A stretch of 64,000 nucleotides of DNA from Convolutriloba macropyga (GCF_964194025.1 NC_134468.1:13640001-13704000), one strand, 5' to 3'. Shown: positions 9,453-41,650, counted from the first letter of the stretch. Made by a program: numbers and translations. The notes: generated by a model from the letters alone, not told the origin.

Positions 9453-9584
9453 CGCTCTCCTGGCATGTTCACGCAAAATGTGGCGCAGTGCTTTGTTTGA
9501 GGACTCGAATGCCTGCAGCTTGTCCAACAGAAGAGACCTCTGTTTGTTCAGCAGAGAAATATCCGATGAAGACATTCTTTTATC
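9453..9584 (-). CDS. ODF2/cenexin-like exon, duplicate copy (phase 0-0, 44 aa)
   Basis: ttaAG|GAT..GCG|GTTAGT; DKRMSSSDISLLNKQRSLLLDKLQAFESSNKALRHILREHARRA, identical to 11901-12032. Confidence 0.7.
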
Positions 9585-11900: not shown

Positions 11901-12032
11901 CGCTCTCCTGGCATGTTCACGCAAAATGTGGCGCAGTGCTTTGTTTGAGGACTCGAATGCCTGCAGCTTGTCCAACAGAAGAGACCTCTGTTTGTTCAGC
12001 AGAGAAATATCCGATGAAGACATTCTTTTATC
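11901..12032 (-). CDS. ODF2/cenexin-like coiled-coil protein exon (phase 0-0)
   Basis: AG/GT bounded. Peptide resembles vertebrate ODF2 'EKQMTCTDINTLTRQKELLLQKLSTFEETNRTLRDLLREQH' (recalled, not searched). Confidence 0.8.
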
Positions 12033-20000: not shown

Positions 20001-23000
20001 GAAAACGCAACAACTTGTCTGCGTATCAAAAAGGAAATGAACTAGGTTTTGTAGAATCAGAAGCTCTTATTCCCCAATAAAAGCAGTTGACAATCAACGA
20101 TCTGCAAATTTTCACAAAATAGGGAATAGAATAGGAAATGTGAGCTTTTAATTAAAACTGCCAGCTGTTTCCCCCAATAGAATTTCCCAGCTGCTCTGAA
20201 TAGGAGTATGTAGACCATATGGAGACCATAGTTTTCTACGGTGTTATCACTTAATGTTATATCTCAGTTTAATTTGCTTTGCTCTACAGTTTTTTTCTAT
20301 GCTATTGACTCTATGTTCAAAAATTACAAAATCTAACGATCTTCAGCCTTCAACAAAACTTCTTTGTCAACTTCTTCGGAAAACGTGAACTTCTTTGGTG
20401 AGATTTTTACCTGTTTCTCTCAATTAAAAATGCGACTGCTCATCCACCAAAAGGTTGCAAAAATTCGGGACATTAAAATGTTGAAAATCATTCCATTGCC
20501 ATTAAAAAGTATAGAGAAAACTATTATCAAACCCTCCAAGACGTTTTATGGCCCTTGAGGCTGGAAAGCTCAAAAAATGACAAAAAAGTTCCGAAAACTT
20601 TGGTATACTTCAAAACTTGATAAAAATTGCAAAAATTATCATCATTTTCGTGATTGTTTACATTACAAAAAAAACAGATTTGATGAAATTGCCGTAATTA
20701 TATCTTTCAGAAGACATTTATCAACTTTTACAAACAACAATTCAAGAATAATCAAACAAAAACCTCGAAAATTGACAAAAAAACGTGAAAAATTGCGCTA
20801 TTTTGGTCTCGAAAACTCATGAATGACCTTTTAAGCTTGAATTACGGCCTTCTCAGTAGCTTCAACACTCTAAGCACTTGATGGACTATTAAACGCGGCT
20901 GAAACCTAATGCGACTGGGTCTTACCTGTTTATCCAATTTTAAAGATCAAAGTCATGACAAATGCATGAAAATTTTTAAAACATCTTATGAAAAAAAGAG
21001 AGCACCAAAACAATCCAATTCCTGGATTGTAAAAAATGAGGATGTCCCCAAAATTCGTCGCTATCGCTTCGCGGCTATTAACAAAAGAGTGAGGGTGAAA
21101 ACAAAATATACATATTTCGGTTGTTTCTATAACGCCGCATGATCTACTCAAGATCCTAATGCTCTTAATAATTTCAAAACATCCAATTTCGCAATTGTAC
21201 TCCAATTGTGATCGCATCCAGTATATTGATTCGTAAAAATAAGTAATTGTTAAACATTTGAACGCACTTTTGCCTCTATTAGGTCAAACAGTACTTCTAT
21301 TCATTAATCTTCAGAAAAACGGTCGCTAATTATTTGGCTATGAAAGACGACCAGGGGGAGGCAACAGTGGGAGGGGGGTTTGGAAACGAATCTAGAGTGA
21401 CTATTTCCTTTTCGGAGTAACTCCGTGTGGTATTTCAACGGCATCGCAAATTACTTGATCATTGTCCTCAACTTGATATCAAGAATTTGGAAACGACTCC
21501 AAATTTGTCAACAGTACAGAAAACAGAACCTGGAGAATGGGATATATTCGTTTGGTAATAATTGGAATACTAAACAAACGCGTACACTTGAAAACCCTCA
21601 AATCACCAGTTCCATGTTTCCAAGAAGTACAGCCGTTCGTACATACTATAGCTGGCGACTAAATCAACACTAAATTACAAGTCTGCTTGGCTCCATAATG
21701 ATTGTAGTGTCTTGTTTTCCAAAAAACACAAGAGCTGTCTTTGCTATTTGCTATCTGAAATCGGCCTTTGTTACCAGTCAATTCCCCAAAAAATTAACTC
21801 CTAATTTTTAAAAATTGAAAACGCAACAACTTGTCTGCGTATCAAAAAGGAAATGAACTAGGTTTTGTAGAATCAGAAGCTCTTATTCCCCAATGAAAGC
21901 AGTTGACAATCAACGATCTGTAAATTTTCACAAAATAGGGAATAGAATAGGAAATGTGAGCTTTTAATTAAAACTGCCAGCTGTTTCCCCCAATAGAATT
22001 TCCCAGCTGCTCTGAATAGGAGTATGTAGACCATATGGAGACCATAGTTTTCTACGGTGTTATCACTTAATGTTATATCTCAGTTTAATTTGCTTTGCTC
22101 TACAGTTTTTTTCTATGCTATTGACTCTATGTTCAAAAATTACAAAATCTACTGATCTTCAGCCTTCAACAAAACTTCTTTGTCAACTTCTTCGGAAAAC
22201 GTGAACTTCTTTGGTGAGATTTTTACCTGTTTCTCTCAATTAAAAATGCCACTGCTCATCCACCAAAAGGTTGCAAAAATTCGGGACATTAAAATGTTGA
22301 AAATCATTCCATTGCCATTAAAAAGTATAGAGAAAACTATTATCAAACCCTCCAAGACGTTTTATGGCCCTTGAGGCTGGAAAGCTCAAAAAATGACAAA
22401 AAAGTTCCGAAAACTTTGGTATACTTCAAAACTTGATAAAAATTGCAAAAATTATCATCATTTTCGTGATTGTTTACATTACAAAAAAACAGATTTGATG
22501 AAATTGCCGTAATTATATCTTTCAGAAGACATTTATCAACTTTTACAAACAACAATTCAAGAATAATCAAACAAAAACCTCGAAAATTGACAAAAAAACG
22601 TGAAAAAAATAGCGCCATTTTGGTCTCGAAAACTCATATATGACATTTTAAGCTTGAATTACGGCCTTCCCAGTAGCTTCAACACTCTAAGCACTTGATG
22701 GACTATTAAACGCGGCTGAAACCTAATGCGACTGGGTCTAACCTGTTTATCCAATTTTAAAGATCAAAGTCATGACAAATGCATGAAAATTTTTAAAACA
22801 TCTTATGAAAAAAAGAGAGCACCAAAACAATCCAATTCCTGGATTGTAAAAAATGACGATGTCCCCATAATTCGTCGCTATCGCTTCGCGGCTATTAACA
22901 AAAGAGTGAGGGTGAAAACAAAATATACATATTTCGGTTGTTTCTATAACGCCGCATGATCTACTCAAGATCCTAATGCTCTTAATAATTTCAAAACATC

Positions 23001-23380
23001 CAATTTCGCAATTGTACTCCAATTGTGATCGCATCCAGTATTATTGATTCGTAAAAATAAGTAATTGTTAAACATTTGAACGCACTTTTGCCTCTATTAG
23101 GTCAAACAGTACTTCTATTCATTAATCTTCAGAAAAACGGTCGCTAATTATTTGGCTATGAAAGACGACCAGGGGGAGGCAACAGTGGGAGGGGGGTTTG
23201 GAAACGAATCTAGAGTGACTATTTCCTTTTCGGAGTAACTCCGTGTGGTATTTCAACGGCATCGCAAATTACTTGATCATTGTCCTCAACTTGATATCAA
23301 GAATTTGGAAACGACTCCAAATTTGTCAACAGAACAGAAAACAGAACCTGGAGAATGGGATATATTCGTTTGGTAATAAT

Positions 23381-23826
23381 TGTCAGCGGAGGCCTACCTA
23401 TACCCATGTGACGTTCACCTTTATGCCAGCTATCTATTAGAGCAATTTTGGGGGCGCTAACTATTTTGGTTTTCTCAGGCTTTTGTTTTAAAGATTTTAA
23501 GTCAGCATGCTCGAAAGAGTTCTTTTGGCAATTTTGAGTCTATCTCCAGAAATAAAAGTTTTGTGCAGCAAAAGTTTTATTCACAAGTCAACTGAGCTGT
23601 AGCTATCGTTCTCTCTGTTCTGAGAGTGGCAATTAGATTAGAGCATAACATTTGATGTTAAATATTTGCACGAGATAAAGTAAGAGCATTGTACAATTTA
23701 ATCTTTATAATCCCGGATGCTTATGCGCGTGTGAATGAGTTAAATTTACTAACAATGGGGTAAATGCACGCGCATGGATTGTACAAATATGTTTAAGCAT
23801 GGCACGAATGTATGAGGGGCATGACA
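23381..23826 (-). repeat. 3' LTR (446 bp)
   Basis: Matches 35902-36339 and lies next to the PPT. Confidence 0.95.
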
Positions 23827-23839
23827 CTCCCACTTCTTC
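23827..23839 (-). promoter_or_regulatory. Polypurine tract
   Basis: - strand GAAGAAGTGGGAG immediately before the 3' LTR TGTCA. Confidence 0.85.
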
Positions 23840-23882
23840 AGAAAAAAAAAATTAATGTCAAGTTTTCAATTTTCAGTTTTCA

Positions 23883-24975
23883 ATGTCTTCTGATCTTAAT
23901 TTATTCGCAATGAACTGTGATTCTGACGAGGCGCAGGCTGTCAGTTCTGTGTGCGAATCAGCATCCAGCGAGAAACACCAGAGAAATGTTGTCTGGGCGA
24001 GAGAGCTATGGAATTTTGTGTCAGCTGGAAGTGTGTCGTCTGTTCCAGAGGTGACCCGTGAGGAAATTGAGGGTCAGAGTATGAGTGTTGGCATTCTTCG
24101 CGGGGAGCCTCTGATGGAGTTCAGCAGCCCCGAGATGCAAGTAAGAATCTTGAAGTATGTGTAGAGGTAGTAATCGTGTCTTAGTTGTTGTTCACTGCAT
24201 GAATTGTGAATGCATGTTGTGCTGTTTGGTTTTTACAGCAGTTGGCAACGGGATTGAGGACGCCATTGGATTTCGAAGGACACTTCGCCAGCAACGAGAA
24301 GATCAGGCCAGATTGGGCTTTTCAGTCATGGGTGTGCGAGGGTGTGTATCCTCGTGACATCCTAAGTTACCACCCGAGGCCACATCGCACTGAAAACTTG
24401 TCCGGCTTCTTCAACTTCCGTGTGTTTGGGGGCGAACGTCTGTATGATCCTAGCCTGCTCATTGCAAACTCGTTCACGTACACAGGCCCTCATGTAGATT
24501 CTAAGCCCACGCTGACCACACTTGCTGTTCTCCTCTTTGGCGTGAAGCTCTGGATTATATGTCCAGACATCAAGACAGACACGGCAGCGTTCATTAGAGG
24601 GCTGGATTTGAAAGAAATGTGCAGCTTCCTCAAAGTAATTGCGCAATTAGTTCGGTTTTGACTGTTTTTTGTTCCTCTGCTGACACTATGGGAGCATAAT
24701 GCGGTTGATGTTCTTGATTGTCAAATGTCATGCTTGTTCAGGGGCCAGCAGGGAAAGGATTCAGATTCGTGATTCAACGGCCTGGTGACACGCTGTATCT
24801 GCAAGAGATGGTTGGGCACGCTGTCTTCACTGTCAATGGTCTCCCTGGCATCGACTGTGGGATCATTGAAGAGGGCTCGTGTCTGCTATCGTCACCAGTG
24901 GTCACGGATTTGTCTCCAGAGAGGTTGCACGGGTTAAGTTGGATCGTTGAACAACCCGGCACCCGCTGCTCGTAA
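23883..24975 (+). CDS. JmjC-domain 2OG/Fe(II) oxygenase, 3 exons (23883-24140, 24239-24634, 24742-24975), ~295 aa, antisense within the retroelement
   Basis: Phase-0 introns GTAAGA..TTTTACAG (98 nt) and GTAATT..GTTCAG (107 nt) join three ORFs in frame. Motifs TGPHVD, LLFGVKLWIICP and QRPGDTLYLQEMVGHAVFT. AATAAA at 25084. Confidence 0.85.
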
Positions 24976-25132
24976 GAGGAAGCAGAAGAAGAAGGCCCGG
25001 TTTGGAAGAAATCAGCGCCCAAAGAGTTAGCTCAATGACAAGTGGTATCAAATTTTACTGCACTTTTTTCCCAAATAGTAATGAATAAATAGCGAAAAAT
25101 TGAAAACTGAATAATACGAGAAATGCGGTAAT

Positions 25133-25925
25133 ACCCATATAGCAAAAAGCACAATGTTTACGGTTTGTATATTAAATTTGAGTTGCGTAGCTCAAATAAC
25201 AAGATGAGGCTTTTGTTTTTCGTATTTTAAGAAATTTTATAAATAGCACACAGTTCAGATAAAAGGTGAAATTAAACATAATATAGTGCACAGAAGCACG
25301 CGAAAGAGGGTATAAAGCACGAAGGTTGTTATGATCAATAACTGTGTTAAAAATTACAGCGCTGACTTTTATAGTTAAGCCAGGCTTTTGTTTTAAAATA
25401 CACTGTTTTTTTTTTGAATTAAGTTAAAAAAAAATAACACGAAATTAAACTTTTTGGTTCCTTCATGAAGTCCAATCAGCGCACAAAATTACGCATTTAA
25501 CACAAAGCAATAGCTGAGGAGTGTGTATAGAGAAAACGAGAGCTTTTGAACAAACGGCACTACCAGGCTTTTGTTTTAACTGCAGCAAACTTTATATAAA
25601 TATCACATTCAGAGGGTAATTGTATTCGATTAGAACATAAGTACTAAGCTTAGCCACTCATATGACGTGAGAAGGCACATGTAGGAGCTATGCTGAGATT
25701 TATAGAGAGATTGAGCCAATAGAGTTGTCAGGCTTTTGTATTAAAGAAGCATTAAAAATAAAGCAATGAATAAAACTTGTTCGTCAAATAAAACATAAAT
25801 TAATTAAAAAGTATTTGCGTTTAAGATTTTGTTTTACCCATGTGACATTAAGCACATAAACTCGGAGCTCCTGACAAAGAACGGTGGTTTTCTGTTGAGT
25901 AGTTTGGTCAGGCTTTGTTTTTTAA
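25133..25925 (+). repeat. Degenerate array, 5 units with ~175-bp period, two-part motif
   Basis: AGGCTTTTGTTTT-like box at 25207, 25382, 25565, 25730, 25910; ACNCATNTRAC-like box exactly 74 bp upstream at 25133, 25491, 25656, 25836. Confidence 0.7.
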
Positions 25926-26488
25926 CAATAACAAAATAGTGAAATTAAAAGCAAATCTTTTTTCAAATCATTGAAATATTTTTTATTTTAGAGCCAACAA
26001 CAAGCAGCACACAGCTTCTAGACGAGGGAAGCCGCAGCGAATAGCTGCAAGCAGAAGGGTGGGGAGAGGAGGGGGACAGGGGGGAGAAACGAAGCATCGT
26101 CATTAAGTTTTAGTAGGTATATCCACTTTATTTATACTTGAAAAATTTTCTGGTTATTAAATTGAGAAGTAGCACACATATTGAATCCGCGATAATCTAA
26201 CATATTTGTAGCAATTATTCGTGTCGGTAGTTTTGGTGGACGAATTGTAAAATAATTTTCATACAGCTCCAGAAATAAATGTATTTTTTTCCTGTTTTTT
26301 TTTTCAATTTATATGAGTATTTTTTTTTTCCTTTTCACAATTATATAATTAAATCTTTCAAGCCAAAATCTTTTATAATTGAGTATAGGACTGAGAGTAG
26401 CACAGGTATAATAAATTGTTTGTGAGTGAAAAACACCCAGAATCAAATCAGTAACTAATGGTTTATGAAGATTTTCAGATCTATAAAA

Positions 26489-26761
26489 ATGATGTCAAAG
26501 ATATTGTTTGTTGCATTATTTGCTATGATTGTTACGAGTGTTGATATTAACAAGTGCATTTTATTGAGCGAAGAGAACAATTTTGGGACAAATTTGAAGT
26601 GGTTGTGTTGTGATGGAGTACAATTTTTGAGCGAGGCTGGAAAAATTACAGCAAAAGCAGGGGCATGCGAAAATTCCCAAAATAAAGTGAAGCCTTCAGC
26701 TGGCAGCATGTTAATGATAGCCAGTTTTGCAATTGTGCTACAATTACAGTTGAGTCATTAA
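26489..26761 (+). CDS. Small predicted secreted, GPI-anchored protein (90 aa; ORF open from 26465)
   Basis: N-terminal hydrophobic signal MMSKILFVALFAMIVTS, 4 Cys, candidate omega site in CENS, polar spacer, hydrophobic C-terminus MLMIASFAIVLQLQL. Confidence 0.6.
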   Translation: MMSKILFVALFAMIVTSVDINKCILLSEENNFGTNLKWLCCDGVQFLSEAGKITAKAGACENSQNKVKPSAGSMLMIASFAIVLQLQLSH

Positions 26762-26940
26762 TATGAGAGTAGTAGGAAAGTGGTGAAGGAAAACAGTTTA
26801 ATGAGAGCAAGTAGATGGAGTTGAGTAAAGTGAACAAAACTAGAAAATTTCAAAAACAAAGAAACTTTTAGTTTTATTTACCATACGTTGAATCTGTAAA
26901 TGAATTAAAGTTAGGAGAAGATTGATCTATATATTTTTCA

Positions 26941-29242
26941 TTAAGCACGCGACTCATAAATCACTTGAGGATAAATGGGGGGCGGAACAATCGATTGCTC
27001 TGACTCTGGACAAGATGCAGATTGAGAATCCGCTGTATCAACAGTAGTTGTTGAAGGGCTAAAAAATGGATTTGGTAAATTTAAATCACGTCGTCGGAAA
27101 ATTAATCCCTTTTCGCGAACACGATGATTAGGGTGTTGTCGCAAGTAGTCATAATCTTCATCAGAAACTACCAAAATGGGCTGTGATTTAATAGTGTGGG
27201 CAGAAATAGTTAGGCGAAATGGGAAACGTCTATGAACTTGAATGTACCGGTGAAAAAGATAACTCATCAAAAAGTGTAGACCGAAAGACAAAATAAATGT
27301 AGTGATCGCAAACACTATATAAGGTGTCCAGTGCACCGTCTCATCGAATTTTGCTGTTATCTGAGGATGAAATTGTTTCATGCGATTAACAATAGGTTCA
27401 GTAACTTTTTCGAGTTCTTTATAATTACGTCTCTTATGCTCAGGAATGTGAATTAGTTGGAGATGAACCTCCTCTACTAATTGTACTCGAGCAATGTCAA
27501 CATCAGACATTTGTGGCATAGAATCAAGAGATGGAAGTTGATTGAATAAAAAGCTAAGCGGCGTTGGTAAATTAATGTCGAGTCTTAACTGGTGTTGTAT
27601 ACTGACAGGTAGACCAATCTGATCTTAAATGTATATTAGGTCCTTCTAATTCCTGTCCACACGCTAAAATAATAATGCAAACTTGGCACCCTTGTCTATG
27701 TTCTTTACTTAGGGGATGACTAGAATTCGGAGATCTAGACGAGAGCAGAAAGTTTGGCGTTGCACTAGTAATCAGCCATCTACCATGGCCTAACGATTGA
27801 GCCTTTTCTTTGATAGGTAATTGAATTGATCTGATGCTACAAACTTCGAGTGCGGATAGAGTGTCTTTAAAAAGCAAAGTAGCCAGACATGAGTCCTTCG
27901 ATTTTTCCATCGCAAAAGAAGAGAAACAAATTGAGTAAAGCTTAGAGCCTATACATTCTTGTAAGTCAAATTCAGTCAAAAGTGCAGCTTCACTTTGCGT
28001 GTCTGTTACTGCAATGTAAGGCGTTTCTAAAACCCAAATGGTTGCTCTTGTTGACTCTTTAGTTGGCATTGGAACTGGAAGAGCGTGAATTACATCTAAA
28101 GCTGTAGAACCTGATGAAAAAGGTATAGATAATGTTAACATAAGACCAAAGTCGACACTAACAACACTTGTAACAAGTCGTGTCTCATAGTAAGACATCA
28201 CATGTTCTATTGGAATGGAAAGTGTTAGTCGATCTCTGTTGTATTGAGTTTCTAGCAAAACTTGTTGTAAAATTCGAATAAAAATTTTGCGAGGTATAAG
28301 AGAAAGTGGCAGCATACCATCTGCAATGGCAGTAGTCGAGCTCAAAATATTCATTCTAAAAGCAAAAAGAGCAGATCTATATGTGCGCAGATTGGTGTAT
28401 ACAGACGTTAAAATAGAGTTCAACAGGCCAATGTGGTGATTGAATTCTTCACGGATATAAAGAAATTGGTCACAATTTCGCATGTAGTTAATGCTGCTAG
28501 CCAATGTGTCAAACTGTGTCTGTAAAATTTTAACATTAGATCTCTGGATTTCAGCTAGATGTTCTGTGGCTTTACGCAGGTCTCGGAGTTCCTTTCCTAC
28601 TATAAAAAATTTCTCGTTCGTGGCGTTTTGGACACTAGACCATTCTTGCTGTAATTGGTTCATGTGGTTGATTGAGTCTACAATAGCTTTTCTATTCTGC
28701 TTACCAATCTGATTGCATCCGCCAAACATTCGTCCTAATGTACAGGATAGTTTGTCTTTGAATCCCATGCCCAGACCAAAGATTCCAGCTGCAGCGCCTG
28801 CTAACAGGGCAACGGGAATGCCTCTTCGTTCTCGATATTGATGCTCTGTAACTTTTGAGGGGAACAGCTCTGTGAGTTCTTGCTGAAGTTTCACCAAGTC
28901 GTTTTCGGCTCTTTCTTTCTCTGCAATGACTTCGGTAAGAACCCATTGTGAATTGAAGTTGGTGGCAGTGATGTTACTGTAGTCAAGTTGGCATCCCTTG
29001 TTGGGGTGATTCCAGATTGTGTCCATTCTTTGTGCGATTTCAGAGATAAATTTATCAATTGTTAGGTCAAAATTTGGAAAAGGCAAAACAAATTGAATCT
29101 GTTCAAATTTTTCAGCCAATAGTATTTTTCGATGGTAATTAAAAACAATGCCATTATGTTCTGAGTTTCCTGCTATCAGAAAAGGAAAGATTATTAATTG
29201 AACAAGCGAAATTGAATACAAGTTGTAACCAAAGTTGGCCAT
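26941..29242 (-). pseudogene. env: env, class I fusion glycoprotein (baculovirus-F/errantivirus-like), one frameshift near 27584
   Basis: Signal peptide, furin site RERR|GIPVALLAGAAAGIFGLG fusion peptide, heptad region, Cys-rich region, TM WTPYIVFAITTFILSFGLHFLMSYLF. The shifted frame LDINLPTPL.. aligns with the second env. Confidence 0.9.
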
Positions 29243-29509
29243 TCTTTAGTTAAAATTTGTTTTCTTAAGTTCGCCAATTGTTAGTACTGCTCAATTCGAC
29301 TGATTTTTGGATAAATGATCTAAATATGTGAATATTTTGGTTTGTATTCTGAGTGTGTTGAACTTTATAAGAAAAGGTTATGTTTGAACTGACGGGAGTG
29401 ATATCCAAAGTTTAGTCAAATTAACTTTTATCAAATGTTACTAGATTTGTTTGCTGTTTCAGTGGAGCACAGGAAGGACATAGTTTGCCTACTTAGATAA
29501 TCTAAACAA

Positions 29510-32500
29510 TTAGTTTGCGAATCGGTCAGAGTTCGATGAGCTGGCTTGATAGCGTTTTGGTACGTTCACCTCTCGGCGAAGTTCATATGCCCTGTTAGTT
29601 CCAACGCGTGGATCTTGATCTGGTGGAACTAATGAGCGGCGCCTTCTTTTTGATTTATTTGGCGGATCCAAAGGAACCGCTTGTGAAAACACGCTGGTCG
29701 GTTGAGTAGTGGCCCGTGTAACGTAATTTGGATAGTGTCGGGTATCAATGAATTCGGCACTCTGAGTAGTTGGTTGGAAGTGTTGGTTTCCTTCTACCAC
29801 AAATTGCTCCGCAGTATTTTTATACTCTTCGTGACAAAAACCTGGCCTGTTTTCCTGGTTTTGGGTCTGTAGGGGTCGCAAAATGGGCTGCTCATCATCT
29901 GATTGTTGTAATATGGGGTCTGAATTTCGTCCATCAGCAACTAAATTTGTGTTATTATCATTTTCACGTCGGTTTATATTTAATTGCAGTTCCGGATTAT
30001 TTGCAAAGTGTGTTGGAGCATTAAAACGTGATCTCACACCAAATTGCATAATTGAGGAACCATTAGATGGTCCCACTATGATTGGCGAGTGGTGGGAGGC
30101 TAGATCTTTTAGGGTTTGGTCAAAAATTTGAGGTTCAGAGATTATTTTTGTGATTGGGTCGGCTTTAAAAATTTTGGAGTCAATCTCTTTCAAATCTTCA
30201 AACTCGTATTTTGGTTGAATTGGACGCAAACCAATACGATGTACGAGTTGTGTATCGTTGGTATTAACTTTGCGAACTATATAATTTGAATTTGTTAAAA
30301 CTTGCTCAACGCGATAGAGCGGTAACCATTTGGTTACTGATTTAGCAGCAAAGTCTTTTGTACTACTTATTTTTGGGTTCATTAATAGGCAGTACGAATA
30401 CAATGCTAGAGGTTTTGAAAGAGCTTTTTTGTCATAGAAACGACGATATTTGTTGTATGCAACTATGGAATTATCCCTAGCACCAGCAAAGAGCGTGTTC
30501 ATACGGTCTTGACTTTGTTGTAAAAAGTCTTGAGTTGGTTGCGCTTTTTTGACAGTTAAATTATTGAATCGCAAGTCAAGGGGCTTTGTCGGCTGACGGC
30601 CATGAAAGAGCAGGGTCGGGGGGCATCCTATTGAAGAATTATAAGTGGTGTTATAGACAGAAGCTGCGATATCAACATAATGGTGCCAGTCTTTTACAAT
30701 TATATCTTCGTAAATATGCAAAAATCGTTTTACTATAGCATGGCTACGTTCAACTGCACCAATTGTTTGAGGATGTTTTACAGATGCCAATTTTAGTTCA
30801 ACTTCTAGCAATTCACATAAAGTTTTCATCATCTTTGACGTGAAAACTGAGCCCAAATCACAAAATGGTTGATGGAAGGTATGCGTGCTGCATAAAAATT
30901 TGAAGCAAAAATCTGGCAACGTTTTCCGCCGAGGCATTTTTCATTGGGATTAGAAAAAGATAACGGCTGAAGATATCCATCGCAGAGAGTATGTGTATAA
31001 CCTCCGGAGGGATTAAGTTTGCCTACAATATCTACTTCCATCAAATCTCCCGGAAAACATTGTTCTGATGCAATTGGTAAAAGAGGTGTTTTTAGGCTGT
31101 TTTGCTGAACTGATTTGATTTGCAAACAAGATGAACAATTGGACACATACTCTAAAAGAGTTTCTGTAAATTCAAGAAAGTAAAACCTCTGGCGAAACTG
31201 GTTTGCAGTTTCGGCTGTTCCAATGTGTCCCATAAATTTGCTATTGTGAATTCTAAACAGAATCTCATGACGAAGGTGCTTAGGAAGAACCAACTGACGT
31301 ATAAAATTCTGTCCGGTGTTATCGAAAAATTTGCGATATAACACATTATCATACAATTCCAATCGGTTCAATTGTTTATTATATTTTTGCAATTCGGTAT
31401 TAGAGTAAGTTGTAACTGGTTTCACTTTTCTCTTGATCCAATTGATCACAGTTCTAATATTGCCATCTTTTTGTTGCTCCTCAAAAAGATTCAGGGACTG
31501 GTTGTTATTGCTGAGATCAAACTCATCTAAGGGGTTAGCTTCTGCGAGTGAATTTAAGGGGAAGTCAAAAGAAGGCTCAAACACTTCAATCATATCAGAA
31601 TCTGGTTCCTCTAAATAGCACTGTAAAGCTGTAAGACTATTGTCTGGAATTTTTGGTCGGAATTCGACAGCAACGTCTATAAGTTGAATTCTGGTTTCCA
31701 ATTTTAGTTGGAGCTTTGTAGCAGGATTAATATAGATCCTAGACAAATAATCTGCGGCTACGTTAGCTTTACCTGGGACATGCCCCAAAACAAAATTGAA
31801 ATTAAGGACATGATCAACTGCATTCCATAAGGCAGTTGGAATTGTCTTTGCCTGGAAAAAACTAGTCAAACTTTTGTTGTCAGTCAACACTAAGATAGGT
31901 TTTTTAGTCCCCCATAAGATGTGCGCAAAATTATCAAAAGCAAAAGGAACTCCCAGAAACTCTTTTGCATAAACTGATAATTTAAGTTGCGTTGTATTAA
32001 AGATTTTAGAACCAAAAGCCACGGGAGCGTATTGCTTCTGTTCTAGTCCTTCCTGGTTCAGTACATAGTCCTCTACCATAAGGACGTATCCTGCGGAATA
32101 ATAGCTTGCGTCGGACAAAATTACATATTGTAGATCTGTTTTTGGTTGGCGAAGGGTTATTTTACAAGCATTGTTTAGCATTTCTATTAGTTCACTCATC
32201 GATTTTCGGTGCTCATCCGTAATTTCAAAATTGTTGTTACATTTTAGTAGTTTGTAAAATGGGAGCAGTCTCTCACTGAGGTTCGGTAAATAGGTCCTAA
32301 AGTATTGAAATAAACCAACAAGTCTTTTGACTTGCTTGAAGTTTTTTGGCATTTTGAGATTTGATAAAAATTTATCTATTTTGGCCTTTATGGGAGATGT
32401 CCCTTCCGATGAAATTGTTCTACCTAAAAGTGTGATCTCGGGGACACCAATTTCACATTTTCCCATTGATAACTTAAGTCCTGAATTTCTAATACACGTA

Positions 32501-33890
32501 AAGATAGCTTTCAAATTTCCGTAAAGACACTGAAAATCAATTGCGCCTGTTCCCAAATCATCCACGTACTGGAAACATTGGTCATTAGCTATACATGAAT
32601 CAAGGTACTTTCTCATGAAAGAGCTGAAGGCACTGACTGATCTACTTAGTCCCTGTGCTAACCTAGTGTACGCAAAGGTTCGGGAGGCAAAATTGAAGGC
32701 TAATAACTGGACAGATAATGGGTCAGACATCTTAACCGCATAATACGCCGGACTACAATCTAGTTTTGCGAAAATTCGTTTGCCCGCTAAATGTGCTCCG
32801 ACATCTTCTATAGTTGAAATCGGGAAATTGTTAGAGTTGTAGTCATGGCGTATTAAGTGATTAATACGCCTAAGGTCAACTAATAGTCGGAGTTTTCCGG
32901 ACGGTTTGCGTTGCGCAAAAAGAGGGCTCGAGTATTTGGAATAGGGCAGTGTAGTGATGATTCCAAAATACTGCATTATAGCTAAATCAATTAGGATTTC
33001 CTCGCGCAAGTGAATTGCAGTGGGTGGGCTCTGAGTATACACTGGTCGCTGTGTTTCAGGTGTGAGCTTAATCTTAAACTGGTCATTTCCACCGACATCA
33101 TAATTGTGCCGCGCAAAGACATCATGAAAAGAAACTAAAAGTTCTTCAAAGTAGGCGTTAAAATTGTAAGTCGAGCAACTACTGCTCCCTTTGGTACTGA
33201 AACTACATTTGGGGTTACATTTAAGAAAGCTATTGGCGTTTTTGAAGATTGGATTTTTGAAAAGGAGCTGGTTAAACAAAGACCTGTTGATCTTTCAAAA
33301 CGTGGGTTAGGATCTACAATTCCAATTGTGTTGTCGGCTAAAATATTGTCGAGAAAACAATCTATTGTTTCCTGACTATTGGGGAAAATGTTCAATTTTT
33401 TGATTGTTTTGAGAACGTATTTATGTTTTTTTAAATTTCTTTTTCGTTTTGCCATTACGCATTGTCATTTCTGAAATTTGCAGCGATATTTCAGGCAGGT
33501 GTAGTTTTTGATGCTACGTCAATTAGAATTCTATTGTTTTTATAGAATGGAAGACCTAAAATTGGGTTATTCATTTTCGGCAACAACAAAAACTTTTCTG
33601 TGAATACTTGATTAGCGAGAGTGAAGGTGATTTCAACTTGACCTAGGGTTTTTGCATGGGTTGCGTTTGCCACTTTTACAACGGGAAAGGGGTTTGTATC
33701 AAGATATTTAATACTCTGCGGTGCAGAAGATTTAATTTTCAAGCATGGACGGTGTAAGAGCACTAGAGAAAGCACCAGAGTCCACTAAAAACTTTAAGGA
33801 AAGTGATTTAAACGTTAGGGGAACAAAAAACAGATTTGAGGAAAAAGGAGGCATAACAGCAGTTAGAAAAGGGGGTTGCAAATGTGGCTG
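29510..33890 (-). pseudogene. pol: pol (protease, RT, RNase H, integrase) with frameshifts and an internal deletion
   Basis: FLVDSGA protease motif (~33785); RT LRLLVDLRRINH, AQGL, YVDD; RH SDAS..ELL-like..TDNKSL; IN HHCC (H..H..CSSC), DIVG, DLGSVFTS, ERSH. Confidence 0.95.
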
Positions 33891-33892
33891 AC

Positions 33893-35781
33893 CTAGTTTT
33901 TTTGCTGATCAAATGGCAGTTGCTGATTTCTTTCAGGTTGAGGTTTGGACCAGCAGTACTGCACTGTGTGTCCATACTTTCCACAATTGCGGCAGTATCT
34001 CTGGTTTCTGGTGGGCATTGTATTTGACCAGTGTCCTGCGTATGCTGTTGGATAGCCTGATGCTGGGTAACCTTGTGCTTGCACACCCGCTTCATCAGTT
34101 GTCGCTGACTGTTGGCCGTGGGACTGATAGCCATAAGCCTGGTAGACTGGCTGCTGTTGTCCTGTTGTTATATAGCCCATTTCCACCGACATCATAATTG
34201 TGCCGCGCAAAGACATCATGAAAAGAAACTAAAAGTTCTTCAATTTGTTCCTTTTCTTGTTCAGTTAAAATTGAATTGTCCCACCGAAATTTTGAAAGAA
34301 ATTTTTTCCTAGACTCAGAATCTTTTGTTGGATCAAGCTTTTCTTGTTCTTTCAAAAATTTGAGTGTCTCAAATATTCTTTTGTGAATACCGGTTAATGC
34401 ATCTGGGTCCTCACAATTTTCAGGTGTAGGAAACCAAAAGCAGTCTGTTGGAAATGGTAAACTTTGCTGGGAATTGTCAACAAGCTCGTTTATGTCGCTG
34501 CCATCTATATTTAAGAGCGCTGGGTCAATTGGTTGTAAATACTTTGCTTGCTTAGGCGTTAAAATTGTAAGTCGAGCAACTGGACGGTGTAAGAGCACTA
34601 GAGAAAGCACCAGAGTCCACTAAAAACTTTAAGGAAAGTGATTTAAACGTTAGGGGAACAAAAAACAGATTTGAGGAAAAAGGAGGCATAACAGCAGTTA
34701 GAAAAGGGGGTTGCAAATGTGGCTGACCTAGTTTTTTTGCTGATCAAATGGCAGTTGCTGATTTCTTTCAGGTTGAGGTTTGGACCAGCAGTACTGCACT
34801 GTGTGTCCATACTTTCCACATTTGCGGCAGTATCTCTTTCAAATTTTGACTTTTATATAGCCCGGTCTTTGAGAGCTGATTGCATTGTGACTCTGATTAT
34901 TTTGACGCCAGTCTCTTTGTTGGAAAGGTTGTTGCATCTGCCAGTTTTTGTTAAACTGGTAGGGCGGATTAAACCGCTGTCTTGGGTAAAACCCACCTCT
35001 GCCTCGATAGAAATGGTGCGGCTGTCTAAAATTACTATAAGGAGCATTAGAGTTTGCATTTTGACTTTTATGCTCTTCCAGTGACTTCGCTAATTTGTTT
35101 GTTGTTTCTTTCAGCTCTGTTTGATTTTTATTTAAGGCACTCATACTCTGAATAAGTGAGGTCATTTGTGAGGCTGAGATTTCGCTAAATGCTGTTCCGA
35201 CATCATCTTCAGGGTATTGCTCTTCAAGCATCGCCCTTCTAGAAGCCCGTTCACAAGTCTTCTACAGTGGTGTGGTCAGGAAGAGTTAGTAGGTACTTTT
35301 TAAGCTTATTTGGCAAACCATTAATAAAGTTCTCCTTAACTCTTCTGACTCGCTCATTAGAACGATCTTCAGCAGCAACTGCTGGCACGCCAGCAGCGGC
35401 AGCTCGCGCAGCAATATTTGGAAAAGCAAGACTAGCTAAGCGTTGCAACTCTGTCAAAAAATCATGAATGCTTTCCTCTGATTGCTTCAGTTTTCTATTT
35501 TGGAATTGGAGTTTATAAAGTTCAATTCTATCAGGGTTTACATACCGGTTTCTCAATGCGTCTAGTGCTTGATCCAAGTCTTCACGTATGGCTTCTGTAA
35601 GCTGGTCATAAAAAACTAAGGCATTACCTTTAAGATGAAGATGCAAGTAGCGATGTTGTTGATCCTCGTCGATTGCTGCCAATCCAATGCAACTTCGAAG
35701 TTGTCGTTCAAATTGAGTAAAATTATCTTTCTCTGATCCCGAAAAGGGCGTCAAATTGAGAAAAGGTTGCAACTGAGCCAT
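33893..35781 (-). pseudogene. gag: gag (Ty3-type capsid + CCHC knuckle), frameshifted and internally rearranged
   Basis: LTPFSGSEKDNFTQFERQL..LKGNALVFYDQL capsid; knuckle CR[K/N]CGKYGHTVQYC present twice (~34790-34832 and ~33955-33997), each followed by an AAAAAAC slippery heptamer and TAG. Confidence 0.9.
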
Positions 35782-35887
35782 AGTTTACAACAAGAGATTG
35801 CAGAGTTTTACGATTTAGTTGTCATTTCCAATGGGAGTCATATTTAGTTTTAAGAGAAAAAATCTCTTGACTCAAACTTGCCAAAAA

Positions 35888-35901
35888 CACTCCTGTCACC
35901 A
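35888..35901 (-). promoter_or_regulatory. Primer-binding site, tRNA-Leu-like
   Basis: TGGTGACAGGAGTG directly after the 5' LTR; one mismatch to the complement of the recalled tRNA-Leu(CAG) 3' end (TGGTGTCAGGAGTG). Confidence 0.85.
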
Positions 35902-36339
35902 TGTCAGCGGAGGTGACAGCGGAGGTTCTCCTTTATGCCAGCTATCTATTAGAGCAATTTTGGGGGCGCTAACTATTTTGGTTTTCTCAGGCTTTTGTTT
36001 TAAAGATTTTAAGTCAGGATGCTCGAAAGAGTTCTTTTGGCAATTTTGAGTCTATCTCCAGAAATAAAAGTTTTGTGCAGCAAATGTTTTATTCACAAGT
36101 CAACTGAGCTGTAGCTATCGTTCTCTCTGTTCTGAGAGTGGCAATTAGATTAGAGAACAACATTTGATGTTAAATATTTGCACGAGATAAAGTCAGAGCA
36201 TTGTACAATTTAATCTTTATAATCCCGGATGTTTATGGGCGTGTGAATGAGTTACACTTTACTAACAATGGGGTAAATGCACGCGCATGGATTGTACAAA
36301 TATGTTTAAGCATGGCACGAATGTATGAGGGGCATGACA
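35902..36339 (-). repeat. 5' LTR (438 bp)
   Basis: Matches 23381-23826 and is followed on the - strand by the PBS. Confidence 0.95.
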
Positions 36340-38251
36340 ATAATTGGAATACTAAACAAACGTGTACACTTGAAAACCCTCAAATCACCAGTTCCATGTT
36401 TCCAAGAAGTACAGCCGCTCGTACATACTATAGCTGGCGACTAAATCAACACTAAATTAAAAGTCTGCATGGCTCCATAACGATTGTAGTGTCTTGTTTT
36501 CCAAGAAACACAAGAGCTGTCTTTGCTATTTGCTATCTCAAATCGGCCTTTGTTACCAGTCAATTCCCCAAAAAATTAACTCCTAATTTTTAAAAATTGA
36601 AAACGCAATAACTTGTCTGCGAATCAAAAAGGAAATGAACTTGGTTTTGTAGAATCAGAAGCTCTTATTCCCAATAAAAGCAGTTGACAATCAACGATCT
36701 GTAAATTTTCACAAAATAGGGAATAGAATAGGAAAGGTGAGCTTTTAATTAAAACTGCCAGCTGTTTCCCCCAATAGAATTTCCCAGCTGCTCTGAATAG
36801 GAGTATGTAGACCATATGGAGAGCATAGTTTTCTACGGTGTTATCACTTAATGTTACATCTCAGTTTAGTTTGCTTTGCTCTACAGTTTTTTTCTATGCT
36901 ATTGACTCTATGTTCAAAAATTACAAAATCTAATGATCTTCAACCTTCAACAAAACTTCTTTGTCAACTTCCTTGGAAAATGTTAACTTCTTTGGTGAGA
37001 TTTTTACCTGTTTCTCTCAATTAAATATGCAACTGCTCATCCATCATCTGTTCTGTTAGAGAATGCACCAATCCCTTACCTTTTTAGAAACAAATTTTAC
37101 CAAGTTCTATTTTAAATTATAAATTGTTGAAAAACACTCCAAAAATTCTCTCTGGAATTGAGATTGTCTTGGTGTCATGGAAACCAGAATCAAATGCGTG
37201 TTCATTGGAAAAAAACAATTACAGAAACAGACAACACAATCGTACACAATAACATATATTTCGCACTCCTACGCAGCGCAATTATCGGTCTCAGAGGCTG
37301 CCGTGTTACTAAACGTGTAGCTGAGGTTTATATTACATAGTTTTGTTGTGTGGGAGGGGAGGCTAGACAGCTAATTAGTAAAGTAACATTTCAACCTTTT
37401 GATGCGGCTCCTGTAGTCAATCACACTAACATTTCGCTTAAGTTTAAAATACAATGTGCTTTTGCGGTAAATTCAAATACGCCGCTGTGATGTTTCTTAT
37501 TGGTGGCTAACTCTTTTGTCTATTGTAGTGGATCTGACACTTTTGCAGTAACCTCTTGTCAGTAGACCGATGGAAATTTGCAATCATCTTCATGATATCA
37601 CTTACATAACATAAAATCTATAGGATAAGGTTGGAACTGTATAAATCAGTTTACATTTTCAGCAAGAACTGAAAAAACTTTTCAACAATTGATTCAGTTT
37701 ATATAGTTTTTCATAAAATCCATATATATAAAATTTTGTATATATAATTTTAAACTTGTAATATTTAACCCCTGGGTTATATTTTCAATTTACTTGTTTA
37801 AACAAAAAAATAATAACCACTTTTGTATCTCGCTGCAAAAAACATCGGACAAACATTTAGGAAGGGTTGGAAGAAGCTACACATGCTGGTCTAGGATTAT
37901 TACCATCCGCGGGTCTCTAGAACCCTAAAACTCCATGAATTGCCTTTCACACCGCGAACGTAGATCTCCGCAGCAGTTTTAGTGAATCGCATACTTATAT
38001 TAGTAAGGCTCTAGAGAACTGCCCGGCGACCTAATGCCCTCGGGTGTTATCAGTTTATCCTGTCTCTCAAGTTCTGTTCAGTTGAAGGTTTCTGATCTTT
38101 AGGCATCCGCCTCTGTCGATCAGCTCTTTCGTCGGAGGGTCATTTCCCTGTCAAATTGACGTTTTAAACTTAATACAACTTTGCTTCAGAGCACAACAAG
38201 AACCGAGGAAGGCAAAAGCTACATTCTTAAGTACATTTTATATAGAATTAC

Positions 38252-38913: not shown

Positions 38914-39403
38914 TTGAGATCTTGTGAGTGGGACTCACAAGATCTCAAGCCACCCTGTTTTAGCTTGAGGATCTGTATACAAGTTCAAGAGACCAAATAT
39001 ACAGATCTTCAAGCTAAAACAGGGTGGCTTGAGATCTTGTGAGTTCTACATGTAGAGATGTCTCAGCCTAAGTTTGTTGATCATGCAGTCGATTAAATAC
39101 CGACAAAAACATTCCTTAGGAAAATACACTTGGCTTGATAATACGGACTGCCAGAAAAACATCGTCTGAGTTTTTGTCTTTCAAAAACGCCTCTTTTGCT
39201 TCGGGAGTATTATTGCACCCAGCAGCAGTCATAAAAAGTTTCCTAACACTGCCTCAAAATGTTCACAAGCCATGAAAAACAAAAAAATAACGCCTACTTA
39301 TAATTTAATGTCTATTTCTACAGGCATAAAATATTTTTAGATTGGCCACGTGAAATTAATTGTAAGCCCTGTAGCATTCAATCTTTCGAGAAAACCCTCC
39401 AAA

Positions 39404-41650
39404 ATGATTTCTTGGAAATACCTTATATTTCTCATAATTACAGTGCACATTTGTTATAATGACAACAAAATCGAATCACAGAAAGGTATTGATTTTATAT
39501 ACCAACAACAGCTACTCCTTGCTGAAAAATTCGTGAATATTCAATTTCTAGTTCCTTTTCCAAGAATGAATGTCTCGTTGCAAAATCAATTCAGAAATCT
39601 TTCGCTACTTTTGAAAAACTCTTGGAATGACTATTCATTTGGTTGTCAACTGGATCATATGAACACAAATGAGACCAGTTTAAACTTCGACTATCTTCTC
39701 CATCATACGGAAAACGAATTCAAATCAGTCCAACTAGACATATTGAATATAAAAAACGAAATACAGAGAACATTTGGAACAAAAGAGCAAACAACAACTG
39801 ATAACGAACGGACAAAAAGAGGAGCCGGCCTAATTGCTTTAGGAGCATTAACAGCTGTAACTGCAGGAGCAGGAATAGCGTGTTCTCTCGGCAGCATTTT
39901 CGGAGCTTGCGGAGGATCCAGTCGAGATCGTGAAGACATCGACTTGGCCTTGTCACAGATTGAATTGAACAACCATCGGTGGGTAGAAGTTAAAGGCAAA
40001 GTCAACTCAAAAATGTACCTCATTGCTGACCAACTCGACGATGTAAACTCAGTGCAAAAGCGAATTATCCAAACGCAGAAAAATCACACAATGGTGTTGA
40101 TGAAAGCAGTGGATATTATCCAAAATAACTCAAGAGCATTGATGGCATGCTCCCAATTGTTCTACGCAAGGAACTAAATGCTTCAAGTACAGGCGAGTCT
40201 TCTGGGATCTTTTTCAGCGTTGCTAAATGAACTTAAAATGTACCGTGTTGCCATCTACAGCTATAAGCTAACAATTTTGAACTCGGTAATGATTATGGTG
40301 AATAAATTGATTCCTATGGCACTCCTACCTAGATCGGATTTAGAGGAAATACTTCGAGATATAAACCACTGGCAATCCGACACAAATGAACGTCTTACAT
40401 TGGCTATACCAATAACACAAATTCTAACTTACTATGAAACGAAAATACTGAGAAACGTAGACATTGTTGACGATGGGATGTACTTCACATTAGCCATTCC
40501 ATTTGTTACCGCAGCGACAGTTTTAAATTTTTACAAAGCAATACCAATACCCATGCCTAATGATGGAACAGACGGTCACGCATCACAGTATGCTATTGAA
40601 TCTGATTTTATAGCAGTTTCTTCTACTCAGAAAATAGCGTTACTTTCACAGGACGAAATCAATAGATGTGTCGGGTCGAGTAGCTTCTCGGTGTGTATAA
40701 ACGGTCTTTCTCTAGAAACAGCCCAAGATACATGTCTTGGATCACTACTTATTAACAATCATTTAACTGCTCTGCAAAAGTGTGAAATTAAAACCGTGAG
40801 ATGGCCATTAAAGGAAAAAGCGAGAAATTTGGGAAATGGCAAGTGGTTAATAACATCAGCATCATCGAATTTCAAAATGTATATAAGCCCAATAATAAAC
40901 CATGATCCATTGAAAAGAACACCTTTACCAGGATGCCAAGTCTGCATCATTGAACTTCAATGCGGGACAAAACTGGAAACCACATTTTTAGAAATCAGAG
41001 CAGACATGTTTTCATGCCAAAACGTAACGCTTCAAAAACTGGATATTAGACTAACTGACCCTTTGAAACATCTCTTATCAAAAGTTCCGGCAATTGACAA
41101 CTTGCCACATTTTGCAACCATTGCTCAAGCAAGACAACAGTTCATTGAGGAAATACAAATCCAAATGTCAGAAATTCCTAACCATCAAAGACCATCGTTG
41201 AATAAATTAGATGAAATCGCCCAACCAATTTTAATGAATATGCAGAGTATTCGACCTAGTTTAAGGAATCGTTTCACGCAAAGTGACACTTGGATAATGT
41301 CTGTCATAATTAACACAATCTCTTTTATAATCTCAATGATATTACACGCTCTCATAAACTACGTTTGTCAAAAGTATAGTCGACGATATTCAAAAATGCG
41401 CAAGTTTGTTGTGGGCTCATTTGGAATTCATCCACGACAAATACTAGTGGTAACAGAAGATGAAAGGCAGACACTTATGCTACAACCTGGAAACCGACTG
41501 ACAGCAGAGAACATTGTCATCACGGACAAACAACTGTCAAAGCTTCTTGGACCTACAGCTCCAAAACGAGAGGAACTCCAAGTAATGCAACCATCTTACG
41601 ACGTCGACCTATTTTGCCAGCACTTGGCCAATAATCTTAAATCAGCTTAA
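39404..41650 (+). pseudogene. env: env glycoprotein with one in-frame TAA at 40175-40177
   Basis: Signal peptide, RTKR|GAGLIALGALTAVTAGAG, TM near 41290-41360. Collinear with the other env (LLAEKF.NIQF.VPFP, RLTLAIPI..YYET, LGNGKWLITSA, GCQVCII). Confidence 0.9.

Follow-up and report, generated by a model that had tools for sequence, protein, structure and literature searches.

Seeing three features read from one strand within what looked like a retroelement encoded on the other, we asked whether the locus represents a single mobile element that carries its own antisense accessory genes, and what those genes might do. The window analyzed is a 64,000-nucleotide stretch of the Convolutriloba macropyga genome (GCF_964194025.1, NC_134468.1:13640001-13704000). 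The original prediction described positions 23381-36339 as a complex Gypsy endogenous retrovirus with an antisense cassette (JmjC enzyme, motif array and GPI protein) that moved with the element, and inferred a possible invertebrate retroviral self-de-silencing and host-modulation module. We found that the observation itself was confirmed, whereas its interpretation was only partly supported: the env-carrying Gypsy identity, the integral cassette and the LTR-matched array held, the JmjC identity held only through a bridging relative, and antisense expression, GPI anchoring and de-silencing or host-modulating activity remain inferences.

One Gypsy element with an antisense module

To establish the element's boundaries, we compared its termini and flanks, revealing one minus-strand LTR element of 12,959 bp. 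Its 3′ LTR (23381-23826, minus strand, 446 nt) and 5′ LTR (35902-36339, minus strand, 438 nt) are 97.4% identical over 418 nt with TG..CA ends, while about 30 nt at the U5-side end differ by an indel. A 5-bp target-site duplication (ATAAT) lies at 23376-23380 and 36340-36344. The host flank is a 1.8-kb tandem repeat, and the neighboring unit (around 21557-21563) shows the uninterrupted target with a single ATAAT. A polypurine tract (GAAGAAGTGGGAG on the minus strand, 23827-23839) abuts the 3′ LTR, and a primer-binding-site-like sequence starting with TGG (35884-35901, minus strand) abuts the 5′ LTR, though no tRNA was matched and no tRNA gene was found in the window.

We next evaluated the element's own coding content. 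The gag-protease-pol region (29510-35781, minus strand) is broken and carries an internal segmental duplication in its gag-protease part, but a gag domain remains at 35251-35781 and one 816-aa ORF (30829-33279) still holds, in the order expected of Ty3/gypsy elements, RVT_1 (residues 124-288), RNase H (354-480) and the integrase zinc domain Integrase_H2C2 (666-723), with relatives adding rve. The env gene (26941-29242, minus strand) lies in two frames (one frame change), whereas relatives are 725-788 aa in one frame, and includes an RxRR site followed by a hydrophobic stretch. While the window env gets no direct Pfam hit, it is 32% identical over 95% of its length (E 1e-83) to a relative (P0013) that passes Pfam Baculo_F (28.1 bits against a cut-off of 24.1), which makes it an F-type env.

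The 3,114 bp between env and the 3′ LTR (23827-26940) hold three plus-strand features. The first is a three-exon gene (23883-24975; exons 23883-24140, 24239-24634 and 24742-24975) with GT..AG introns, both phase 0, whose C-terminus is uncertain because sister copies differ there by one indel. The second is an array of five U5-like units of about 175 bp (25080-25965; spacing 165-183 bp), each with the core (C)AGGCTTTTGT(T/A)TT, at 25207, 25382, 25565, 25730 and 25910, and a weaker box about 75 nt upstream. The third is a small ORF (26489-26761) of 90 aa from the second ATG (98 aa when read from the opening of the ORF at 26465), with a hydrophobic, signal-peptide-like N-terminus, four conserved Cys (C..CC..C) and a hydrophobic C-terminal end.

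To determine whether this cassette could be a nested insertion peculiar to one copy, an outcome that had been set beforehand as grounds for rejecting the idea, we searched for other copies and related elements. A full sister copy (L005) is about 97% identical over the whole length, and a second (L001) has the same LTR plus the gene. Taking the window's family as family A, at least three further families (B, copies L002 and L006; C, copy L003; D, copy L007) share the order and orientation at about 65% nucleotide identity, although family C shows neither a small ORF nor a clear array. Three insertions on different contigs have separate target-site duplications (ATAAT, GAATG, GATAT), and no terminal inverted repeats or duplications were found at the cassette borders. 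Family A includes at least 9 contigs with env, 7 with the small ORF and 5 with the exon-2 ORF.

Assigning the antisense genes and the array

To identify the three-exon gene, we first searched its peptides directly, but the exons returned no Pfam hit even at E 10, and searches against PDB were also negative. The JmjC assignment instead rests on a bridge. A more distant lineage (L008) carries an intronless antisense ORF whose family (A10) matches JmjC in 6 of 6 members, JmjC_2 in 6 of 6 and Cupin_8 in 5 of 6, although the member P0043 stays below Pfam's curated scores and the best E-values among members are only 5e-6 to 2e-3. The A10 profile matches PHF8 (E 2.2e-7), PHF2 (2.4e-7) and KDM7A (1.2e-5), with KDM2A and JMJD7 also listed. 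Aligning the window's exons to A10 with hhalign gave 91.6% (E 8e-7) for exon 2 and 73.8% (E 2.9e-5) for exon 3, while joined exons 2+3 gave one colinear alignment across the exon junction (96.2%, E 2.2e-9), such that similarity of the window's gene to solved JmjC structures is transitive only. The expected metal ligands are present: H85 and D87 of exon 2 and H26 of exon 3 are invariant across the families, and the 2-oxoglutarate-site K103 is present in all rows but one, with these residues aligning to the HxD, K and H of A10 and PHF8. In the exon model the H-to-H distance is 73 residues and H-to-K is 18. AlphaFold models of exon 2 (pLDDT 38.7) and of P0043 (39.9) were too poor for a fold search, so the assignment draws on sequence rather than on a predicted fold.

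We then assessed whether the genes have been maintained. Intron 2 sits at the homologous place in families A-D, and exon 1 is conserved between A and B. GC3 is 0.51-0.60 for the antisense gene (0.58-0.60 in exons 2-3) against 0.33-0.36 for env and pol. Between families pS is saturated (0.70-0.91) and pN is 0.36-0.48, whereas within family B dN/dS is 0.26-0.48 for the JmjC exons and 0.21 for the small ORF, against 0.39 for pol and 0.75 for env. In contrast, the window copy compared with L001 gives dN/dS 1.04, which represents neutral decay of dead copies, and L006, despite 99.3% identical LTRs, has its exon-2 homology spread over three frames. The gene is therefore not needed in cis by every copy.

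Evaluating the array, we found that the exact 13-mer occurs five times in the window, all inside the element: three in the array and one in each LTR (23477-23489, 97 nt from the U5-side edge, and 35989-36001). Across families, arrays of two to six units preserve only a 13-16-nt core, which is family-specific, identical to a core in the family's own LTR and always about 97 nt from the LTR edge. Identity of the 16-nt core is 0.89-0.96, while flank identity is 0.28-0.41 against 0.27 for random sequence. For the small ORF, hydrophobic N- and C-termini and small residues before the tail are conserved in families A, B and D, but the tail is short and a plain membrane anchor fits as well as a GPI anchor.

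Interpreting the antisense module

We interpret the locus as a defective copy of a Ty3/gypsy element with an F-type env, whose lineage carries a fixed antisense module between env and the 3′ LTR. We consider the architecture of this module to be demonstrated: an intron-containing gene assigned through its bridging homologs to the JmjC-family Fe(II)/2-oxoglutarate oxygenases, the LTR-matched units, and a small Cys-containing protein with a signal-peptide-like start and a hydrophobic C-terminus. The introns survive retrotransposition because they lie antisense to the genomic RNA and are never spliced out of it. What the module does is, by contrast, inferred from sequence alone, including its plus-strand expression, promoters, leader exons and splicing, any binding to the core, and enzymatic activity. 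In this view, the LTR's U5-side module would serve the JmjC gene (HBZ-like) and its duplicated copies, the array, would serve the small gene. An acceptor-like YAG lies 6-13 nt before each ATG found (both genes in A and B, the small ORF in D), which suggests spliced leader exons. The core would be a linear binding site for one factor, co-evolving between LTR and array, the enzyme would remove repressive histone-lysine methylation on proviral chromatin and so counter host silencing, and the small protein would act at the cell surface or in the secretory pathway. We hold this explanation as a whole to be only somewhat more likely than not.

A bolder extension, which we regard as unlikely although not excluded, is that an animal retrovirus-like element encodes its own histone-lysine demethylase, expressed antisense from the 3′ LTR and acting on proviral chromatin marked by the family-specific site repeated in the LTR and in an internal array. 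This would represent an enzymatic, self-targeted counter-defense against H3K9-type (piRNA-guided) silencing, conserved across at least two clades of F-env Gypsy elements.

Among the alternatives, the best surviving, though still unlikely, is that the cassette is conserved but the JmjC-family protein is a protein or nucleic-acid hydroxylase acting on an element or host protein (Gag, Env, a restriction factor, a translation component), with the array as unrelated regulatory DNA. The product is short (about 295 aa) with no reader domain detectable by Pfam, JMJD7, a hydroxylase-type protein, is among the PDB matches of A10, and many small JmjC-only proteins are hydroxylases rather than demethylases. 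However, the best solved matches are all histone-lysine demethylases of the PHF8/PHF2/KDM7 group, K/R-rich, NLS-like stretches lie at or just past the C-terminus in families A and B and in A10, and the motif shared by LTR and array fits a chromatin-level system.

Less likely still, the core may work at the RNA level as a packaging, export or stability element, analogous to the direct repeats of avian sarcoma viruses or the constitutive transport element of simple retroviruses. The array does lie in the 3′ untranslated part of the sense RNA, the same core lies in U5 of the 5′ leader about 90 nt before the PBS, and L008 also has a 172-bp repeat next to its JmjC ORF. Yet folding 100-nt windows around all six cores on either strand gave no consistent structure (z-scores from -2.3 to +1.8, with the core in different contexts), and the arrangement of LTR module then gene, array then gene, with acceptor-like sites before both ATGs, fits plus-strand transcription units, though a linear RNA-binding site is not excluded.

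We consider it improbable that the cassette is evolutionary baggage, with transduced host genes of no role for the element and an array produced by template switching between U5 and internal sequence during reverse transcription. The neutral decay of copies, the frame-shifted enzyme gene of a young copy, and the commonness of tandem repeats of unknown function in this region of LTR elements (PMC11963269) favor it. Against it, the genes, their order, the intron position and the catalytic residues persist across families whose non-coding DNA no longer aligns, dN/dS is below 1 within family B, a still more distant lineage carries a JmjC ORF at another position, neutral homogenization would not conserve only the core of each unit, and no cellular homolog of exon 2 was found among 1.84 billion representatives. 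Finally, a nested insertion, host genes trapped between two solo LTRs or a mis-assembly has nothing in its favor beyond the a priori possibility, although the window copy does carry the internal segmental duplication in its gag-protease region, and is refuted by the same cassette lying inside intact LTR pairs with their own target-site duplications at three loci.

Relationship to known elements

To place the element, we compared it with described systems, and no paper found in our searches describes this gene content. The closest by layout are metazoan env-carrying Ty3/gypsy elements ("ancient errantiviruses" with F-type env; Chary & Hayashi, eLife 2026, PMC13524379), which share LTR-gag-pol-env with RT before IN and multiple near-identical copies, but the text of that paper does not mention antisense genes, JmjC or accessory ORFs. 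The analogies drawn in the original prediction are apt as architecture, not as membership. The antisense genes of deltaretroviruses (HTLV-1 HBZ, HTLV-2 APH-2; PMC11963269) likewise occupy the env-to-3′-LTR interval next to the 3′ LTR, and the acceptor-like site suggests, by inference, a leader exon inside the LTR as in spliced HBZ. Here, however, there are two putative antisense genes plus an array in an invertebrate-type Gypsy element, the first product is assigned to the JmjC family rather than being a bZIP factor, and no bZIP or other HBZ-like domain was found by Pfam search.

Plant Retand/Tat Gypsy elements (also Grande, RIRE2; PMC11963269, PMC7264820) already show lineage-conserved antisense ORFs plus family-specific tandem repeats between pol and the 3′ LTR, an architecture that our element matches. 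Those ORFs encode TRP28 (a putative DNA binder), not an oxygenase, the elements have no env, identity between an array core and an LTR core is not reported there, and our Pfam searches detected no TRP28 domain or other homology. VANDAL DNA transposons (PMC5735166, PMC10398659) pair the VANC anti-silencing protein with family-specific motifs repeated in their non-coding regions, much as an element-encoded factor here sits beside short motifs that are repeated in the element's own non-coding DNA and differ between families, but belong to a different element class, and VANC is unrelated to the protein here and acts on DNA methylation without being an enzyme of this kind. PHF8, PHF2 and KDM7A (JHDM1-type JmjC histone demethylases; PDB 3k3n, 3ptr, 3kv9) share the HxD, K and distal H, whereas our product is much shorter, very divergent and without a PHD finger or other reader domain detectable by Pfam. 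Bdelloid rotifer LTR elements, some with a paramyxovirus-F-like env, have captured enzymatic ORF3s downstream of pol (GDSL lipase, DEDDy exonuclease; PMC5408684), but these are different enzymes and were treated as ORF3 transcription units expressed from spliced messages, whereas the genes here are antisense and contain introns.

Hosts silence LTR elements mainly by depositing repressive histone methylation, and very few element-encoded countermeasures are known (plant VANC is one), while we found no report of one in an animal retroelement that is an enzyme. A gene assigned to the JmjC family through its bridging relative has been kept for a long time by a whole lineage of env-carrying Gypsy elements, occurring at two different positions in two clades and, in one clade, beside a site shared by LTR and array, which hints that such elements may fight host chromatin silencing and makes directly testable the question of whether retroelements erase their own silencing marks. 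It also extends the "complex retrovirus" layout, with antisense accessory genes and retained introns, from deltaretroviruses and plant Tat/Retand elements to metazoan Gypsy elements.

Element boundaries, env and placement of the cassette

To evaluate whether the predicted element and its antisense cassette form a single unit, we first examined its boundaries, which revealed that the coordinates of the original prediction, 23381-36339, are exact and that the underlying observation holds. The direct repeats at 23381-23826 and 35902-36339 are 97.4% identical over 418 nt and end in TG..CA, with about 30 nt at the U5-side end differing by an indel, and ATAAT flanks both ends. The element sits in a host tandem repeat with a 1,818-bp period (window 21000-23380 and 36340-36969; 21000-21523 = 22817-23341 and 21557-22188 = 36339-36969, 97-100% identical), so that the neighboring unit serves as an empty-site control, and this unit carries a single ATAAT. 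The coding strand is minus, and Pfam searches found a gag domain as well as, in one 816-aa ORF, RT, RNase H and the integrase zinc domain. A purine tract abuts the 3' LTR and a TGG-initiated, PBS-like sequence abuts the 5' LTR, whereas Rfam and tRNA scans of the window returned no hits.

Evaluating the env region, we found that the 556-aa ORF has no Pfam hit of its own but is 32% identical over 95% of its length to a related protein, P0013, which passes the Pfam model Baculo_F. Relatives are 725-788 aa long, and in the related loci L005 and L007 the 556-aa and 192-aa parts are read in one frame. The element is therefore an env-carrying Gypsy of the F type, a kind recently shown to be widespread in metazoans (PMC13524379). 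A second env-like gene lies elsewhere in the window at 39350-41650 (+), where two adjoining ORFs (275 + 490 aa) are 31% identical over about 660 aa to the env of L008, a more distant F-env lineage. No gag or pol hit lies beside it, and this gene could be a lone or domesticated F-type env, or a remnant of another element.

We next assessed whether the cassette (the enzyme gene, the motif array and the small ORF) belongs to the element, and found that it does. A phmmer scan of exon 2 of the enzyme gene against 1.84 billion representatives returned only four fragmentary relatives and one spurious bacterial hit. Three of the relatives lie next to Gypsy env/pol on the opposite strand, while the fourth (L004) sits on a 1-kb contig with no context. 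L005 is a complete sister copy, about 97% identical from LTR to LTR including the whole cassette, and L001, a further copy of the window's family (family A), keeps the LTR, the gene and 2.5 array units. The family-A copy in L001 (11358-20456) loses similarity inside the array, and a Copia-type element (LTR pair at 15348 / 20286) lies downstream, so this is probably a truncation or a nested insertion. Families B (L002 and L006, 91% identical to each other), C (L003) and D (L007) are only about 65% identical in nucleotides to the window family, and only within gag, pol and env, yet their order is the same: 3' LTR, enzyme gene, repeats, small ORF (in B and D), then env tail, env and pol on the other strand. 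Within L002, positions 5254-13100 hold a threefold tandem repeat of about 2,644 bp, each unit containing the family-B LTR and the 5' part of the enzyme gene (three exon-2 copies), which looks like an LTR-mediated tandem array. A nested insertion, which would have argued against the original prediction, was rejected because the window, L005 and L006 have different 5-bp duplications (ATAAT, GAATG and GATAT) and the cassette borders have no inverted repeats. Family A occupies at least nine contigs of one ENA assembly, which also holds the window's own contig.

The antisense enzyme gene

To characterize the enzyme gene, we examined the plus-strand ORFs at 23883-24975, which fall in three frames separated by two GT..AG intervals of 98 and 107 nt, both in phase 0, with predicted junctions at 24140/24239 and 24634/24742. 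Intron 2 lies at the homologous codon in all four families, with GT..AG in copies of each, although one relative shows a changed splice donor, and exon 1 is recognizably conserved between families A and B. Introns can persist in a retroelement only on the antisense strand.

Direct identification of the window's own exons gave nothing, whether by Pfam searches of the ORFs and exons, by Pfam searches of every family member at E up to 10, or by phmmer and profile searches of PDB. AlphaFold predictions for exon 2 and for the bridging protein P0043 both returned pLDDT below 40. An alignment for structure prediction was built from window rows and P-numbered protein rows only, leaving out rows derived from the other loci. 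The link to JmjC came instead from L008, which has 100% identical LTRs and carries an intronless 204-aa antisense ORF (8513-9124) between pol and env. The family of that ORF (A10, which includes P0043) hits JmjC, Cupin_8 and JmjC_2 in all or nearly all members, although the member shown in full stays under the curated scores. As a profile, A10 matches PHF8 (2.2e-7), PHF2, KDM7A, JMJD7 and KDM2A, with the HxD, the Lys and the distal His aligned. The window's exon-2 and exon-3 alignments each match A10 colinearly, and the predicted exons 2+3 of four families, joined as they stand and used only for this hhalign comparison, give a single alignment across the junction (96.2%, E 2.2e-9), which also supports the splice model. 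Across the families, H, D and the distal H are invariant, and the K is present in all rows but one. A JGI metagenome scan with the JmjC family found nothing.

The distant F-env lineages hold further antisense ORFs in their pol-env interval (L008 8043-9864; L009 7120-9769). In L008, the JmjC ORF is accompanied by two upstream ORFs and by a two-copy 172-bp repeat (8170 / 8342) just 3' of it, and one ORF is conserved between L008 (9580-9864) and L009 (9215-9769) at 41% identity, whereas L009 shows no JmjC match. K/R-rich, NLS-like stretches lie at or just past the C-terminus of the enzyme gene in families A (window 24976-25030) and B (L002, about 13600-13660) and in A10 (the P0043 C-terminus). 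The enzyme exons in A, B and D (window 23883-24975 and its homologs in L002, L006 and L007) are markedly GC-richer than env, pol and the small ORF, with GC3 of 0.51-0.68 (0.58-0.68 in exons 2-3) against 0.32-0.47 for env and pol, which points to a foreign origin or to a different codon regime that has been maintained for a long time.

Assessing selection, we found that sister copies decay neutrally, as dN/dS between the window and L001 is 1.04, a comparison that is uninformative. Between families, synonymous sites are saturated while pN is 0.36-0.48, and within family B dN/dS is 0.26-0.48, comparable to pol, with the three exons together having 14.5 synonymous against 16.5 non-synonymous changes where neutrality predicts roughly a 1:3 ratio. 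Against this, L006 (3025-14866) is a young family-B copy (LTRs 99.3% identical, duplication GATAT) whose exon-2 homology is nevertheless spread over three reading frames, so that either the gene is dispensable in cis or the assembly has indel errors.

The motif array, the small ORF and the state of the window copy

Evaluating the array, we found five sites spaced 165-183 bp apart, and each family has its own core: CAGGCTTTTGTTTTAA in A, GGGGTTTTGTAATTT in B and GCGCTTATGTACGTAA in D. In every one of these families the same core sits 97-98 nt from the U5-side LTR edge, whereas family C shows only a two-copy hint. Pairwise identity is 0.89-0.96 in the 16-nt core and 0.28-0.41 in the flanks, where random sequence gives 0.27, and a weaker box about 75 nt upstream is also shared with the LTR. 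This is the footprint of a constrained site, not of neutral repeat homogenization. A structured RNA element was rejected as unsupported because no consistent RNA fold is seen on either strand, so a linear site is more likely. The possibility that the core is a polyadenylation downstream element was dropped, because no AATAAA lies at a suitable distance in the units.

The small ORF is 90 aa from the second ATG and has a hydrophobic N-terminus, a conserved C..CC..C pattern and a hydrophobic C-terminal end. It is conserved in families A, B and D at 24-35% identity, with seven distinct intact versions in family A and a dN/dS of 0.21 within family B, and homolog searches found none outside the element families. 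The GPI anchor of the original prediction remains possible, resting on these sequence features alone.

The window copy itself is broken in its sense genes, and comparison with L001 and L005 shows junctions of internal rearrangements or indels. By count, gag has about 2 frame changes and 2 in-frame stops; the protease region has about 3 frame changes, part of them due to one internal segmental duplication; pol has 2-3 frame changes, such that RT and RNase H remain in one ORF while the integrase core is split; and env has 1 frame change. The three exons of the enzyme gene are open, but its 3' end differs from sister copies by one indel, so its C-terminus is uncertain, whereas the small ORF is open.

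Relation to known elements and inferred mechanism

To place these features in context, we compared them with described systems. A JmjC-family gene, an LTR-matched core array and a small secretory protein in metazoan env-carrying Gypsy elements were not found in the literature searched. Parts of the architecture are already known elsewhere, however, as antisense accessory genes next to the 3' LTR are known in deltaretroviruses, antisense ORFs plus family-specific repeats are known in plant Retand elements (PMC11963269), and motif-guided anti-silencing is known for VANDAL (PMC5735166).

The interpretation offered in the original prediction is supported in part. We regard the anatomy, the conservation and, through the bridging family A10, the enzyme family as demonstrated by our analyses, while the mechanism is inferred from sequence alone. 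In this view, the two genes would be transcribed from the plus strand, given that the LTR module lies about 400 nt before the enzyme gene, that the array lies 370-555 nt before the small gene, and that an acceptor-like YAG lies 6-13 nt before each ATG found (both genes in A and B, and the small ORF in D). The role inferred for the enzyme carried by this lineage is a chromatin-directed one.
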